Below are positions 46,269 to 55,900 of a stretch of 64,000 bases of DNA, in pieces; the stretch's first letter is position 1; every line of letters begins with the position of its first letter. The DNA comes from Trichosphaerium sp. ATCC 40318 (lineage: Eukaryota; Protista; Tubulinea): assembly GCA_038496445.1 (NCBI GenBank), contig JALMLS010000579.1:186001-250000 (forward strand), read 5' to 3'. Position numbers and translations under genes: made by a program. The notes beneath the pieces were generated by a model. That model saw only the letters and a program-made list of their open reading frames with translations, did no database searches and was not told the origin of the DNA.

Positions 46269-46703
46269 TTATCCGCCAAATCCCCAGTAGTTCGTGTCAA
46301 AGTCTTGGACAAGTTCTTTGTTAGCGTAGAATCTTCTAACCCATTGATCAGCACCTCCTCGAAGCACCTTAATATCAAAGCCAGTTATTCCTTCATCTTT
46401 GACATGATTGTATAATTTACGAGCACATCTAGGACCTCTGACGGCGCTCTCCATACAATGAAGTACTACCGTATTAGGAGATTGTTTTTCAATTATTTCT
46501 ATGAGGTTTGGTAGTGTTTTTGTGAAATTCGCGTCAGAAAAGTTTATAGAACCCTTCACGCGTCCGCCAGCAATGTCATCATCTCTAACGTCAACGACAA
46601 TTACTTTTCCTTCTTGAATCATTGAAATAAGCTCGGCTTGCTCAATAAACATGCCGTTAGCTTTGACCCAATAGAAAGGATCTTTTAGAAGCTGATTTGC
46701 CAT
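46269..46703 (-). CDS. Rhodanese/Cdc25-like phosphatase (Ych1/Acr2/Ibp1 type)
   Basis: VVDVRDDDIAGGRVKGSIN, HCMESAVRGPRCA (HCX5R), VLRGG; single exon. Confidence 0.88.
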   Translation of the reverse strand: MANQLLKDPFYWVKANGMFIEQAELISMIQEGKVIVVDVRDDDIAGGRVKGSINFSDANFTKTLPNLIEIIEKQSPNTVVLHCMESAVRGPRCARKLYNHVKDEGITGFDIKVLRGGADQWVRRFYANKELVQDFDTNYWGFGG

Positions 46704-48084: not shown

Positions 48085-48769
48085 CTATTGCACCTTCCCA
48101 TGGAGATTCAGCTTGATATCATTGATTGGGACCCAGAAATGTATTTACTGTGGCCGCTTCTTTCAAAAAGCGCAGCGACAATGACGAGGTTTGATTGTGA
48201 GATGAAAAGCATGGAAAATGGCAAAAAAGAATCAAAACGCAACTAGTTCAACAAGAGTACTGGAAACACGGTGCACAAGAAGGAGAGTACAAAAGTGGGT
48301 ATCACCACAATGGCAATTTGTGGAAGCAAGGCTTATATGTCAACAACAAAAAAGAAGGAGAATACAAAGAGTGGTATCGCAAGGGTCAATTGAAGGAGCT
48401 GGGTAACTATGTCAATGGTGAAAGAGAGGGACAGTGTTGGAGTTTTATGCCAACGGCTTTGTATGGAACGAGTATAACTATGTCAACGGTGAACTACATG
48501 GAGAGAACAAGGAGTGGTATAACAATGAGCAATTGTGTAGAAAGTGTATGTATGTTAATGATGAAATGGAAGGGGAATACAAAGCGTGGCACCACAACGG
48601 ACAATTGTGGGAGCAAGGCACTTATGCCAATGGTAAGCAAGAAGGAGAGTACAAGGAGTGGTACGACAATGGCCAATTGACAGAGCAGTATACTTTTTTA
48701 AATGGTGAACGAGAAGGAGAATTCAAGAAGTGGGATAGAACTGGCAAATTAAGAGCAAATTATTTGTAG
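48085..48769 (+). pseudogene. Frameshifted intronless F-box-like + MORN-variant (YwqK-like) repeat gene
   Basis: LLHLPMEIQLDIIDW, then ~24-aa repeats EGEYKEWYxNGQLxxxxxYVNG split across frames (shifts near 48235 and 48435). Confidence 0.75.
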
Positions 48770-49180: not shown

Positions 49181-51216
49181 ATGAAACTCAGGAAACGATA
49201 CTCTATTGTTCTCAAATCCGATTCTAAATATGCGCCAAGCCTTAGAAGTGTATTAATATCAATATCCCTCGTATATCTCCCTGCTGCGTTGCTTATTCTA
49301 TCAATATTCGCTTACGCACGTGCGTGCCTCTAAAATACAGAAAAACAACTCAATAATTTTCATACTTCCTTAAATCTTATCTATTTGAAGAAAGTGGCGC
49401 CGTACATACAATAGAGCTGTCTGCAGACGAAAAGAGCTCTGTTAATGAACCAACAACCGGTAATTCCATAACCACGACGCCCGTCAAAGACAGTTTAACA
49501 ATCAAGCCGGAAAAACCAACGAATAAAGTTAAAACAGCTGCAAGTACAGAGATACCAATCGATACTACTGTTTGTGAAGATGCATTGAGTCGAGGAAAGA
49601 CTATACTAGATACAAGGCTTACTACTATAGATGCAAATAACATATTGGGCACTAATCTCACTTTGTACAATTTTTTTGATAATGCGCAGACACAGTTACA
49701 CGTGCCTTACAAGTGAGTTCTCATGTTTTGCAAAACCCCTTTTAATCCATTAGTATTGTTTTTTATCTCTCGGTTCTAACCTATGTACAAAGGTCTAATT
49801 GTGTTACCTTGCATGTTAATTCTTGTTTTTTTCTGACACATTTATAAGGTTGTTATCTACTTGTGGACTCGATATTCAAAATTACAAACCGCGAGACTCA
49901 GCTGCTGGCGAGCGCGCCTTAAACGTATTTTTCTCAACATCGATTGATAGACTGAGTAATGTGCAACACACTCTTAAATCATTGAATATTGCTTCAAAGT
50001 ACGATACTCTTTTATTCTTTTTGCTATTGACACTACTATTTTAGACAGTTGAATCATGAAACCAACAAGTCAGTTAATGTAGTCTTTGTAGAATATTCAG
50101 CATCTCCTTCGCTGAAACTTAAGAATCTTGCAAAAGCTTTCTCTTACACGTACATTTACATTCCAGGTACGAAAACCCACTACTTAAGGGCGTTCAAACC
50201 AAATCACTTACATGATTTACAATAGATAAAATAGGCATTTTATACGGGTGTGACATGTTTCCTAAATCGTTACTCTATAATGCAATGTTCCTACTAACTC
50301 CAGAAGCGCCTCTATCTGTTTTCCATGATGCTGACATTCCTGTGCCTAAAAATTTCTTTACACTGTTAATGAAGCAAACACAGTTACAAGTACAACCTTA
50401 GATTTAAAAATATCACGTGATCTTGACTCCGTTACTAACTGACATTACTAAAAGAAAACTATGGGGTACTATCAAGGCATGTCATATGCCAAGTACCTAA
50501 AGGGCAAGGAAGCAACTGAAGCAAAGACAATTTTCAAGAAAACAGGAGAATATACGTCACTTAATCATCGAACGAAAAAACAAGCTTTGGGTGGTTCAAT
50601 CATCATAGAGAGTGATCTTTTTAAGCGTATAGGAGGGTACTACTTTTAAAAAAAATCAAGCAAGCAAAGGCATAATTTTAGTGTTGTTTCTAAACATAGA
50701 CCTTTGTTTATATAGTTACGATCCTGAGTTTTATTGTGGATGGGGAGCTGAAGATAAGATGCTCATAGCTAAGATGAATAGTATACTAGCAAAGGATCGT
50801 AATATGAGTAAAAAACCTACATTGGCATGCAAAGATTATCCGGCTAATAGGTATCCTGTTTTTTTCGTACTTTTTTAATGACCGTTTTTACTTATTCTAA
50901 TCATCACGTAGATGCACTTGGCATGTCCCTATATTCGGTGGGACATTACCATTTACTATGCTACATCTTCCTCATAAAAAAGCGCCTCGAGTAAGGTATG
51001 GTACTCAAGAAGTAACGTGCCAAACGCCTTGTCACTCTTAGTAACACTTGAAACAGTTTAGTTTTTTTTTGGTAGCCTGCCTGATTTGAAGCTTACTGTA
51101 CATCATTTAGAGCGCTTGTAAGACAAATGGAAAACCTAGTATACGATTTTCAGAAAATGGATTGGGAACAGCAATTAAAATTCATGGAAAGAAAGAGTAA
51201 TGAATTAAAATTATAG
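49181..51216 (+). CDS. Type II membrane glycosyltransferase (GT2/GT7 galactosyltransferase-like)
   Basis: N-terminal TM helix; SVFHDADI (DxD); GGSIII..FKRIGGYDPEFYCGWGAEDK. Confidence 0.8.
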
Positions 51217-51404
51217 AGTGCTCTTTATACATAGATTCTGTATTCCAAAGATGTTAGCTGGTTCAACTATGTAGGCATGTATAAGCCTTGACCTACCAAA
51301 TAAAAAGTTGTTAGCTACTAAAAAGATTAACATTGCACCAATACTCTAGATATTGTTTTGAAAAACACTGTATTCTATTGACTTGTTCACAAGTGCACCT
51401 ATTA

Positions 51405-52524
51405 CTAGGTTCGAGGCGGAATAATACCTTGAAGGGCAATAATGTAGTTTACACCAAGAGAAGGTTGATGGTTCGCAAAAGACTGACCGACTCCTGCAGA
51501 TGTTGTGTCTCCAGTGACATCAACAGTTGCTTCAACAGTTGTTGTTGCACTTAAAGTACCTTAAAGAAACAATAAGAGCCCTATAAGTTCCAACTTTGCT
51601 GTTTGGAATGAACTGAAACACACCTTTGTCAACTGTCAACCCTGATGTATCCACTCCAAGAGAAAGGTTCACATTACCCGATGTACTTCCTATCACTCTA
51701 TTCTGCTCCACTTTTATTGGACAACGTGCATCCAACGATTGACAAGTGTCTACAACACGCAACAAGTTAAATAGACTACCAGATGTACAAGGCGGTGCTT
51801 CTCCTGGAAGCCCTCTTGAGAGTGTGACATCAGCTGTGACATCTAAATTCAGGTCGACATTCGGATCACCAGTGATTGAAGCGCTTCCTGATATTGTAGG
51901 TTGACCTTCAATGGTTGTCGTAGATGTAGTGAAATCGACTGTTTGGTCCATTAATGATACTGAGTGTGCATGAGAAGGCATATTCGCCTCTGCTAGAGTT
52001 GTAGTTTCTGCTCCAAACCGTTGTCCTTGTCTCACGGTTTGTAAAGCTGATCTTATTAGGTATTATTTTGACTGTACAACCATATGTACCGTTTCCCTGC
52101 CCAGAATGTACAGGAACTCTTCCGCGAAGATCGGGTAGCCTACTTTAAATATTAACATCCCTATTCCACAGGTATGCTGGTTGGCAGGTAGTCACAATAA
52201 GCGAACGTACGCAAAAGTACTTCTACCATCTCCGCCATATGTGGTCCCAATTAAACTGAACAACACCATATTACCACTAATGCCTTTAAGCAATAAGTGA
52301 AAATAAGAATCTCAATACTTACTTTGTATCTGACCGTCGCAAAACGCCCAACCTCGCGGAGCAAAAGTGCCCGCAAATATTCTTATCTCTCCAATAAATG
52401 GCTCCGATGCGTATGAAACAATTAACAAGCTCAATAATACCGATGTAATCTTGTTTTTAAAACATAAGCTTTGCACATGTGATATCATAAAAATTAGACT
52501 ACATACTGCGATGAGATGGCACAT
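51405..52524 (-). CDS. Secreted phage tail-collar domain protein (microcystin-dependent protein MdpB-like)
   Basis: Spliced: MCHLIAITSVLLSLLIVSYA|SEPFIGEIRIFAGTFAPRGWAFCDGQ..LFSLIGTTYGGDGRSTFALPDLRGRVPVHSGQG..GAETTTLAEANMPSHAH...GQSFANHQPSLGVNYIIALQGIIPPRT*. Confidence 0.88.
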
Positions 52525-52991
52525 AATATACTTTACCTTTTGGCTAACGCTTCATGAATAAAAAAAAGAGTTAAGTTAGAACAGTTTCGGGCACTGTTTT
52601 TCACAAGCTTGATTTTACTACATTCGTAGCGCTTTAGTAGGGGTTAAACATATTTGTTTAAGAAATTTAAACTCCGCCAATTCCCACGATTTGTACAGAT
52701 GAACTCCGTTGATTCCTGCTGTATGTTTAATGTATCAATAGATTTCACCTTTGATAGAACCGAAAAGATAACGTGGATTTGATTGAAAGTATCATCACCA
52801 CTTGGCTTAAAAAAAGTCTGTGCGGCCACAGCAGCGAATACATAGTGAAGTCTTTAATACAACCTGTGCATGTGAATCTGAGATTTAGATACAAGCAAGA
52901 ATATATTAACAAAGGGTATAGAAAGAAAACAGCAAGAAAAATAACATGTTAGGTTTATTTCGGTTGGACGGTGGGCTATAGAATAACAATT

Positions 52992-55900
52992 TTAAAGAGG
53001 AACTATAGTACACTTTAAACCATCATTCCATTGCCTGTATTCTGGTGTGTAATATAAAAATGCACACGATGAAGGACCTGTATAAGTACCAGGAACAGCA
53101 GCCTAAAAATCATCGTAAATAAAGCACCAGCTTAAAAGAATCTTGGTCGTGCCTTAACATCAATTTGAATTGTTGATTTTTGTTTTGGATCCATACCACG
53201 CCAATACAGTACAACTTTTCTACCGATCACTTCATAGAAATCGATAGCTTCACTCTTGACAAGCTCCTATCAAGTACATCAGTAAAAATCACGTGATTTT
53301 TTGGTAACAATAAGGTACCTTTAATTTCTCATGACGAGGCTCAAGGCCTCCTGGAAGTCCTATGATTGCGATGACCATAGGCAAGTCAGTATCTTTTTTA
53401 TTTTCAATATCGACTTGGATTTCACCAGTCTCTCCTTCCTTGATTGACTCTGGCTTCATTTGAGTTGCAATTGATATTGAGCATTCATCAGAAGAAGGTC
53501 CTTTCAATGTAAAATAATTGATATTCACATTGTATGGTATGTTTCCTGATCCCTTGGCCATGGTTATTTTGAATTCATGTTTACCAGGCTTGAGTTTTTG
53601 TGCAGCTTCTTTGAAATCTACGAACCAGTTAACAATAGGTTGTTAAACATCTCAACAATTGTCTCGTACCAAGATTTATAGGTTCTACGCTTGTAGCGGA
53701 TATTGTCTTAGTGATCTTTAAGCCACCAATAGTCTAAAGAGCCCAGGTAAGGTTATAGTTTAATCAGAAACAGCAAAAACAGTAATTGAGAGTTTTTCAG
53801 TGTAAAGTCGTACAGCAACTAGGTCAATATCCCCGTTTTCTTTTGGACTCTTATTCATTTGACCATATGTGAATACAGCACGCAGAGCTTGCACAGTTGA
53901 TTGTGAAGTACTCCAAGATCCATTTGATACTTGAGATTGAAGGTACTTCAATCCTGCTTGGATGTTCGATGAGAACTTGTTTGGATCATCACGCAACCAT
54001 CCAGTAACTGCAAGACCAGTTGTTTCAACCAATAGAGATTGTCCATATGATCTTACAATAGATGAGGTGCCTCCCTCTACCTTACCATCTAAATATCAGG
54101 TCAGGCAATGACAAGGTCTTTTGAGAAGGGACTGAGCTTACCTTTCGCTTGTTTTGAAGCTAGATATTCACCAGCTTGACGTGCGGCTTTTTTGTTCTTG
54201 GCGTTGTTGAACGCCATGTACATACATGCCCACACGTATGAGTTTTTGTTATCAGGCAGCGCTTTACCTTGGATATCAAGTTCCTTTGTAACATCATTAG
54301 CAGCTCCAAGTTCGGTGAGGCCATAAAGACAATATGCTGTAAACAAATGTAAGAAAAGTACTTTTTAATGGTGGATTGTACATACCGTTGTTGACGTCTT
54401 TTGGAGGCGAAGAGAAAGCATAACGACCGCGGCCAAGGTGGAATCCTCCTTTACCATCTTTACGTGATAAAAGCCAACTCTTGGCTCGATTAACAAGTGA
54501 CTTGTCAACTATGAAACAAAGTTAATGTTTTAGCTTTTACAGCTTCTTAGCACGTACCTTCCATTGATTTACCAAGATCTTTGAGCATCATTAATCCGTA
54601 TGAAGTCAATGATTCATGAGCTGGTGATCCGCCATACCTTAACACAAAACATGAGCAACAAGGTAATAGGTTACAGCACAGAATGTTTTTTGGAGATGGT
54701 GTTACTTGCCATTCGAATCCTGATGTTATCTTCGTTTCGTATCCAACAATTTTCTTATATCCGACCATCATTTTACTGTGCATGTCTGAAATCAATGATG
54801 GATCTACTCCAATTGTACTGTCATTGAAGAACATTCCAGCCATAGCCATTGGATATAGAGTTGACCCAACTTGTTCAAAACATCCACAAGGTGTACGGAT
54901 CATACCCTTTAGAGCTTTTTGGAATTTGGCTGCATTAGTTGGTAGGATAGACACTTCAATATTTAGCGTGTTTGGAACTAAACATAACGGACGTTAGATT
55001 CATCGTTTCGAAACACGTGAAGAGTAAAGTGAAACCTCTGAAATTACAACTTACCATAATCAGGCAATACGTTGAAAGTATGCTTTTCTGTTTTACTCTT
55101 ACTGATTGTACCACTTGCAGATGCTTCCAATGGAAAGCCCTAGATATATTTTTAAGATACTCGTAACACTCAATAATTTATAAATTGGTACCTTTGGTTG
55201 AATACGAACACTGCGAACAATATTATCTTCACGCTCACTTGAAGTGCCGACAACCTTTAGCTCACTTGTGAGTGGTACGTTTTGTATATCGATTGGAATG
55301 ACAGCGCGTTCTACAAACATGTTAGGTTCCTGTTTATTAGCAGTAGAGGATCAAATGAGGTTGGAACATACGTCTTTGTTCTGGCCCAAGAGTGACACCT
55401 TTTCCTTTGTTTGTTTCTGGATCCAAAAGAAAACCGTCTCCGCCCCACACTTCGAATCCAACATCTGTGATTTTATGTCCAGTGTTGTTGACCATGAGTA
55501 CAGGTAATTGCACTTTATCACCGCAAGACACTTCGATAGGTACTTTAAGATCAACAGAGAAAGGTTCCTTGCAAGGAACAAGCCTATTCGAACATTAGGT
55601 AAACAAAACTATTGTATGAACAAAAAAAAAACAATAACGTACAACTCATTGTAGCCTAGCAGATGCGCGTGATGTATAGAATCGCACATAACATTGAAGC
55701 TTGTGATACTATCGTTCATATCAAACTCAAAAGAGGCGAAACCTGTACATGTTCAGTGAGTAAAGGAAGAACTTTACAAGAAAGAAAAAAAAGGTACATA
55801 CCAAACTTATCAGTGACTAATCCTGCATTCCAGTACAAAGTCTCCTTGAACTCAGTTCTACAAAGGAAGAAAAGTAAACATACAATACATAAAAAAGGTA

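Follow-up and report, generated by a model that had tools for sequence, protein, structure and literature searches.

The needle of phage T4 gp37 is built on successive HxH metal sites, and few natural binders of bacterial surfaces are better than the receptor-binding tips of phages. Ahead of its receptor-binding tip, gp37 has a tail-collar domain (PF07484) (PMC12724248). In T4 gp12, a single zinc sits on the threefold axis of a knitted trimer, where His445 and His447 from all three chains bind it, and the C-terminal domain beyond the collar binds the receptor (PMC3004832). Sets of three adjacent PF07484 tail genes are widespread in virophages, and a trimer of three stand-alone virophage collar proteins has been reported to bind cyanobacterial LPS (PMC12724248). 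In a literature search, we encountered no tail-collar gene described from an amoeba or any other eukaryote. Here we analyze such a gene in a 64-kb stretch of DNA from the amoeba Trichosphaerium (the whole stretch is called the window). On balance, we favor the view that it is an old bacterial acquisition and a working eukaryotic gene whose product is probably a secreted, trimeric, fiber-tip-like binder of a surface ligand.

The gene is on the minus strand of the window, at 51405..52524, running from an ATG at 52524 to a TAG at 51407-51405. It has six exons and five introns, and all introns are AT-rich and bounded by GT..AG. Summed exons amount to 846 nt, and in a frame check these gave 281 codons plus the terminal TAG with zero internal stops. 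Exon 1 (52507..52524; MCHLIA) is the start of a predicted signal peptide and falls outside transcript-contig coverage, as does intron 1 (52450..52506; 57 nt, GTATGT..AAG), a prediction that is itself in frame and stop-free. Exon 2 (52323..52449) holds the remaining part of the leader, which is hydrophobic (ITSVLLSLLIVSYA), followed by SEPFIGEIRIFAGTFAPRGWAFCDGQ, the first part of the Pfam Collar domain. Intron 2 (52284..52322; 39 nt, GTAAGT..AAG) has no read support and is placed by the frame and the continuity of the Collar profile; it is required because read-through reaches a stop after three codons and because exon 3 resumes the profile where exon 2 leaves off. Exon 3 (52211..52283) is the middle of the Collar domain (..LFSLIGTTYGGDGRSTF) as defined by Pfam. 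It is followed by intron 3 (52140..52210; 71 nt, GTACGT..TAG) and by exon 4 (52090..52139; LPDLRGRVPVHSGQGN), which ends the Collar domain and was recognized by similarity to bacterial genes. After intron 4 (52047..52089; 43 nt, GTACAT..CAG), exon 5 (51624..52046) encodes a conserved stem (GQRFGAETTTLAEANMPSHAHS) and then 113 residues of tip, as seen in its translation and PHROG matches. Intron 5 (51560..51623; 64 nt, GTGTGT..AAG) separates it from exon 6 (51405..51559), which PHROG and the alignment with bacterial genes identify as the end of the tip, the C-terminal family motif QPSLGVNYIIALQGIIPPRT, and the stop codon. The 3' untranslated region is at least 68 nt (51337..51404) and is covered by a contig at 51337-51465 from run X4, described below, with zero differences.

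The original prediction had placed a tail-collar gene at 51405-52524, and both these coordinates and the motifs it quoted agree exactly with the minus-strand gene. The motif EPFIGEIRIFAG..WAFCDGQ is in exon 2; SHAHS, APPCTSG, and DTCQSLDARCP are all in exon 5; and QPSLGVNYIIALQG is in exon 6. Upstream, a three-codon ORF (ATG AAG CGT TAG) is present on the same strand at 52544-52555, 20-31 nt before the start codon. A palindromic promoter element noted elsewhere in the genome is absent upstream of the collar gene.

Evidence for transcription and splicing comes from assembled contigs, rather than raw reads, of four runs (X1-X4) that were compared with positions 50800-53000. An X4 contig of 594 nt is 100% identical to the window and has joints from 52046 to 52090 and from 51557 to 51622 that correspond to introns 4 and 5. 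For the intron-5 joint, moving the cut by +2 gives CT..AC on the plus strand, which is GT..AG on the strand of the gene. This contig is identical and spliced, and spliced RNA is therefore produced in the source strain. Runs X1 and X3 are labeled as other organisms, with a likeness of 95-97% to the window. Intron 5 is also spliced out in contigs of this relative (including X1) and of run X2, and X1 and X3 share the position of the intron-4 junction and have 11 diverged letters. Contigs of X1 and X3 depart from the window at 52140 into the exon-3 sequence of the relative, and these loose ends mark the acceptor side of intron 3. Across 52206-53000, contig coverage consists of short conserved pieces only and introns 1 and 2 are without read support. 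The predicted eukaryotic setting with spliceosomal introns is therefore upheld, since three of the five introns are removed in transcripts. The predicted number, about five, stands for introns 4 and 5, for intron 3 on its acceptor side, and for intron 2 as required by the frame; intron 1 is a prediction only.

The collar gene is under purifying selection. Relative to the X1 contigs, there are seven synonymous and six nonsynonymous codon changes in 204 codons (pN/pS ∼0.30; binomial P = 0.03). Its composition also resembles that of its surroundings, with a GC3 of 0.22-0.38 compared to 0.29-0.48 for neighboring host ORFs and 0.56-0.69 for bacterial genes. The host controls for composition were two ordinary eukaryotic neighbors, a single-exon ORF of 144 aa with a Rhodanese domain (46269-46703, minus strand) and a MORN-repeat ORF (48218-48769, plus strand). 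Closer still is a convergent gene on the plus strand (50800-51293), two introns of which, at 50848-50908 (61 nt) and 50994-51108 (115 nt), are both GT..AG and removed in contigs. Its contig reaches 51293, ∼43 nt from the end of the 3' untranslated region contig of the collar gene (51337), and its ORF pieces have no Pfam match.

These data bear on whether the locus could be contaminating bacterial DNA in the assembly or a relic in decay, an idea that has only the very high N-terminal similarity to bacterial proteins in its favor. In our judgment, the removal of introns in transcripts, including in the 100% identical contig, and the intact frame of 281 codons rule this out. The host-like GC3, an excess of synonymous changes over expectation relative to the relative's gene, and the spliced eukaryotic flanks argue in the same direction, and we consider its probability negligible.

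Membership in the tail-collar family, with an HxH and a matching C-terminal motif, had been claimed and is borne out by profile scores, collinearity, and conservation of invariant columns. The Pfam Collar profile (PF07484; gathering score of 24) matches exon 2 with 35.2 bits over profile positions 1-22 and exon 3 with 31.0 bits over positions 25-47. PHROG tail-fiber families match exon 2, exon 5 at residues 7-58 only, and exon 6. The five coding exons 2-6 are collinear with whole small bacterial proteins annotated as "tail fiber/microcystin-dependent." The amoeba exons were introduced singly, as separate fragments, into an alignment of 70 bacterial genes, and the amoeba pieces retain all 24 invariant columns and 27 of the 36 near-invariant ones. 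The invariant residues that are kept include both histidines of the HxH and the P, G, and P of the C-terminus. The HxH (H-A-H; 51964..51972), invariant in the bacterial homologs, is predicted from the role of its counterpart in T4 gp12 to be a metal site on a threefold axis. It is also the sole HxH over all exons, and on this point the word "needle" in the original prediction is not supported, as it implied repeated sites like those of T4 gp37, yet there is one only, as in gp12 and the small bacterial proteins.

Other searches with family members and exons returned less. A canonical family member (P0015), with which the amoeba exons are collinear, matches the receptor-binding domain of T4 gp12 (1OCY) by sequence (E = 9e-5), exon 2 has one weak tail-fiber match among PDB sequences (9QGO), and a search of NCBIfam yielded nothing useful for the amoeba exons. 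At the C-terminus, a histidine that is near-invariant in bacteria (GGSQ.H.N.QP) is a phenylalanine in exon 6 of the amoeba gene (∼51468-51485, minus strand), and a histidine is present two residues after the phenylalanine (SFANHQP).

Bacterial relatives of the amoeba gene have a characteristic organization. On the megaplasmid of Ruegeria sp. TM1040, three adjacent genes (WP_011536903 to WP_011536905; locus L001) encode proteins of 168, 172, and 175 residues, and all coding exons (2-6) of the amoeba gene align in order to the three. Across 83 bacterial loci from many phyla (L006-L085 and L001), 75 have three collar genes in a row. In bacteria, the source family is a strikingly uniform three-gene cassette, and we found no described function for it. 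The member of the triplet closest to the amoeba gene is not clear (36, 27, and 16 loci), and sampling was biased by the centering of loci. A monomer fold of a bacterial homolog, based on the alignment of 70 sequences, has a pLDDT of 58, and Foldseek with the homolog recovered only weak, sequence-driven matches to tail fibers (8KEC and 1OCY). The family also includes smaller forms. A metagenomic protein of 105 aa (P0019) is a miniature version that has a signal peptide of the bacterial type but neither the HxH stem nor the tip; its collar runs almost directly into the C-terminal motif (..ARYIIALDGTYPPRH).

The origin of the gene was addressed by ranking similarities exon by exon. Identity between the collar N-terminus and cellular bacterial genes of many phyla is 85-92%. 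For the mature N-terminus, it is 86-90% over 22 residues when compared with genes annotated as "tail fiber protein" on bacterial replicons, where each record matches in three places. Exons 3 and 4 are up to 86% and 87% identical, respectively, to bacterial genes. In contrast, identity of the collar N-terminus peaks at 62% with tail fibers across 50,697 phage records and at 74% with IMG/VR contigs, the latter by a scan with exact 8-residue words that is a weak test. The higher identity to cellular bacterial genes than to phage and viral ones suggests that the source was the cellular MdpB-like branch and not a phage fiber, and the per-exon ranks support the earlier statement that MdpB-like cellular bacterial proteins are the closest relatives.

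Exact 8-residue words identified more than 449 bacterial relatives (one genome per species). The best 80 of these >449 loci are distributed among Gammaproteobacteria, Acidobacteriota, Bacteroidota, Verrucomicrobiota, Planctomycetota, Chloroflexota, Actinomycetota, and others. No donor lineage stands out, and summed exon scores are flat, at 195-209 bits, across Acidobacteriota, Gammaproteobacteria, Chloroflexia, and Bacteroidota. A word search, exhaustive phmmer, and a search of short first-exon ORF fragments retrieved no eukaryotic relatives. Fifty-six ORF matches of the first-exon type were rejected as eukaryotic relatives, as they look bacterial and start with M(S)(E/D)PF or have bacterial-type leaders. 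The gene's own product is absent from the protein databases that were searched, and its genome is evidently not in them.

Five introns and a GC3 that is host-like, unlike that of the bacterial genes, suggest that the transfer is old. The age proposed in the original prediction agrees with these two features and with the pN/pS of ∼0.3 relative to the X1 gene. As read from sequence, the transfer is clear: the collar gene is one that was acquired horizontally from bacteria long ago.

The route of acquisition deserves consideration. Virophage-like elements integrate into protist genomes, and the gene could have arrived via a eukaryotic virus (virophage, polinton-like element, or giant virus) and be the domesticated remnant of an integrated element. 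The three consecutive PF07484 tail genes that virophages widely carry (PMC12724248) are reminiscent of such a source, and one IMG/VR match is on a viral contig of 188 kb. However, the best viral matches are 62-74% identical, compared to 85-92% for cellular bacterial genes, although the viral scan used exact 8-residue patterns and is weak as a test. Furthermore, the neighbors are ordinary eukaryotic genes (Rhodanese, MORN, and the intron-bearing convergent gene), and a second collar copy is absent from within the 64 kb of the window. We therefore regard a viral route as improbable and direct acquisition from cellular bacteria as the preferred reading.

Relative to the bacterial genes, what is new in the amoeba copy, as far as sequence comparison can reveal, is a predicted leader and an orphan, enlarged tip. 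The leader consists of MCHLIA from exon 1 and ITSVLLSLLIVSYA from exon 2, is ∼20 residues long and hydrophobic, and directly precedes SEPFIGEIR. It has a short n-region, a hydrophobic core of 14 residues (mean hydropathy of 1.95), and S-Y-A before SEPF, such that small residues occupy positions -3 and -1. Read by eye, it looks like a signal peptide, and the intron inside it (intron 1) is predicted. Bacterial proteins begin with M-SEPF, implying that the leader was placed immediately ahead of the ancestral N-terminus.

The second difference is in length. From the first histidine of the HxH to the glutamine of QPSL, the amoeba gene has 147 residues, whereas in 209 bacterial genes the median is 57 (5-95% range of 55-61; maximum of 67). 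The amoeba protein is correspondingly long, 281 aa versus 136-217 aa (median of 172) for the bacterial proteins, and the tip has gained ∼90 residues over its bacterial counterparts. The enlarged segment between the HxH and the C-terminal motif spans 51468..51963, intron 5 included. T, S, V, G, D, and N make up 62% of the tip, which has 16 acidic and 6 basic residues as well as three cysteines within 23 residues (exon 5 residues 86, 101, and 108; 51721..51789). The sole N-x-S/T sequon (NLS; exon 5 residue 126) is at 51661..51669. The long insertion after the HxH was anticipated by the original prediction and is present and an orphan, with 147 residues against 55-61 in bacteria; its label as "beta-strand-rich" describes composition alone.

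Searches with exon 5 support its description as an orphan. A word-index search gave zero matches at E ≤ 0.001, tblastn against plasmids gave nothing, and exhaustive phmmer against 1.84 billion representative proteins found no relative of the extra ∼90 residues. The phmmer search had 15 matches (best E = 8e-7), all through the first ∼50 residues except for two (P0004 and P0007) that were discarded as spurious matches to low-complexity or TPR sequence. Beyond the conserved stem, exon 5 has no Pfam or PDB match, and the PDB sequence search yielded a chance match only. Repeats within the tip do not reach significance, as 40 and 22 of 500 shuffles attain the observed score. An AlphaFold model of exon 5 alone has a pLDDT of 36 and is unusable. 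ESM Atlas features of exon 5 are all <0.9, and its matches there are clusters of phage tails, a lead only.

We propose the following scenario for how the collar gene came to its present form and what its product may do. The ancestor would have belonged to the branch of PF07484 that is made up of small "tail fiber / microcystin-dependent protein" genes from bacterial cells. After transfer, it would have gained five spliceosomal introns, a host-like codon composition, the leader, and ∼90 additional residues. The leader would route the protein into the secretory pathway, where three chains, alike or mixed with paralogs, may intertwine as in T4 gp12. Six histidines of the three HxH motifs would then hold one metal ion on the threefold axis, and the acidic, Thr/Ser/Val-rich tip with its three cysteines may bind a surface glycan or protein. 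The predicted class of ligand is drawn by analogy from the phage and virophage relatives. As the amoeba is bacterivorous, the likeliest target would be on bacteria, with roles in prey capture, agglutination, or defense.

A protein of the same origin and fold could instead act on the amoeba's own surfaces, in adhesion, self-recognition, the wall of cysts or spores, or a matrix. The founder of the bacterial subfamily is named microcystin-dependent protein, which has been discussed in the context of cell-cell contact, and a tip that is Thr/Ser-rich, acidic, and supplied with three cysteines is like that of many matrix or wall glycoproteins. However, the characterized collar-family tips that can be cited (gp12, gp37, and the virophage trimer) bind components of bacterial envelopes, and the C-terminus of the amoeba protein is without a membrane anchor or wall-linking motif and ends in the canonical family motif. 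We suggest that action on the amoeba's own surfaces is unlikely. The consequences differ between these possibilities. If the product is an ordinary component of a wall or matrix, the gene is one more transfer into an amoeba. If the protein binds bacterial surfaces, a bacterivorous eukaryote would have taken over the means by which phages themselves recognize bacteria. The gene also offers a clean, datable example of a bacterial gene becoming eukaryotic, in which a leader and introns were added and codon usage was reset.

There are signs that the collar gene may have relatives in the transcript data. Contigs of ∼1.1 kb from runs X2 and X3 match only the DNA of the conserved C-terminal motif (51427-51451) and N-terminal motif (52334-52366), over 25-33 nt, with 957 other letters between them. 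Their word depths of 38 and 219 are far above those of the contigs of the collar gene. These contigs look like a paralog or an ortholog with a different, longer middle. A more speculative extension, to which we assign a low probability, is that the gene belongs to a repertoire of secreted collar/HxH paralogs, each with a lineage-specific tip, that form homotrimers or mixed trimers, a notion prompted by the bacterial and virophage triplets, and provide combinatorial recognition of bacterial surfaces during feeding or defense. Were this so, a receptor-binding module of phages would have been turned into a eukaryotic family of pattern-recognition proteins.

Comparisons to known systems place the amoeba gene closest to the MdpB-like bacterial genes, with some features recalling phage and virophage proteins. 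Like the amoeba protein, virophage DSLV2 tail proteins are short stand-alone collar proteins that are associated with eukaryotes and found outside of tailed phages. They differ in being encoded by three adjacent, intron-free viral genes and in being modeled as a heterotrimer, and the likeness is drawn here by description only. T4 gp37 (PDB 2XGF) shares a PF07484 collar before a receptor-binding tip, but its needle has a series of HxH motifs whereas the amoeba gene has one, and the Foldseek match between 2XGF and a family member was not significant. In the MdpB-like bacterial genes, the amoeba gene has its counterparts over its full conserved length: an N-terminus of SEPF.GEIR.FAG.FAPRGWAFCDGQ followed by the collar, a G.E..TL....P.H.H stem, and a C-terminal motif of QP.L..N(Y/F)II.L.G..P.R. 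These genes are compact and usually three in tandem, and most of those sampled are without a leader. In contrast, the amoeba gene encodes 281 aa, has five introns, a predicted leader, and a tip of 147 residues, and is single copy in the 64-kb window. T4 gp12 (PDB 1OCY) has, like the amoeba gene, a collar and then one HxH. The likeness in sequence of gp12 to the family is limited to the collar, and the trimer and metal site are predicted for the amoeba protein. Whereas gp12 is the end of a long fiber shaft on a baseplate, the amoeba protein has no shaft. Its enlarged segment is in the position of the distal head of gp12, and the amoeba protein may thus be read as a shaftless, secreted, trimeric fiber tip.
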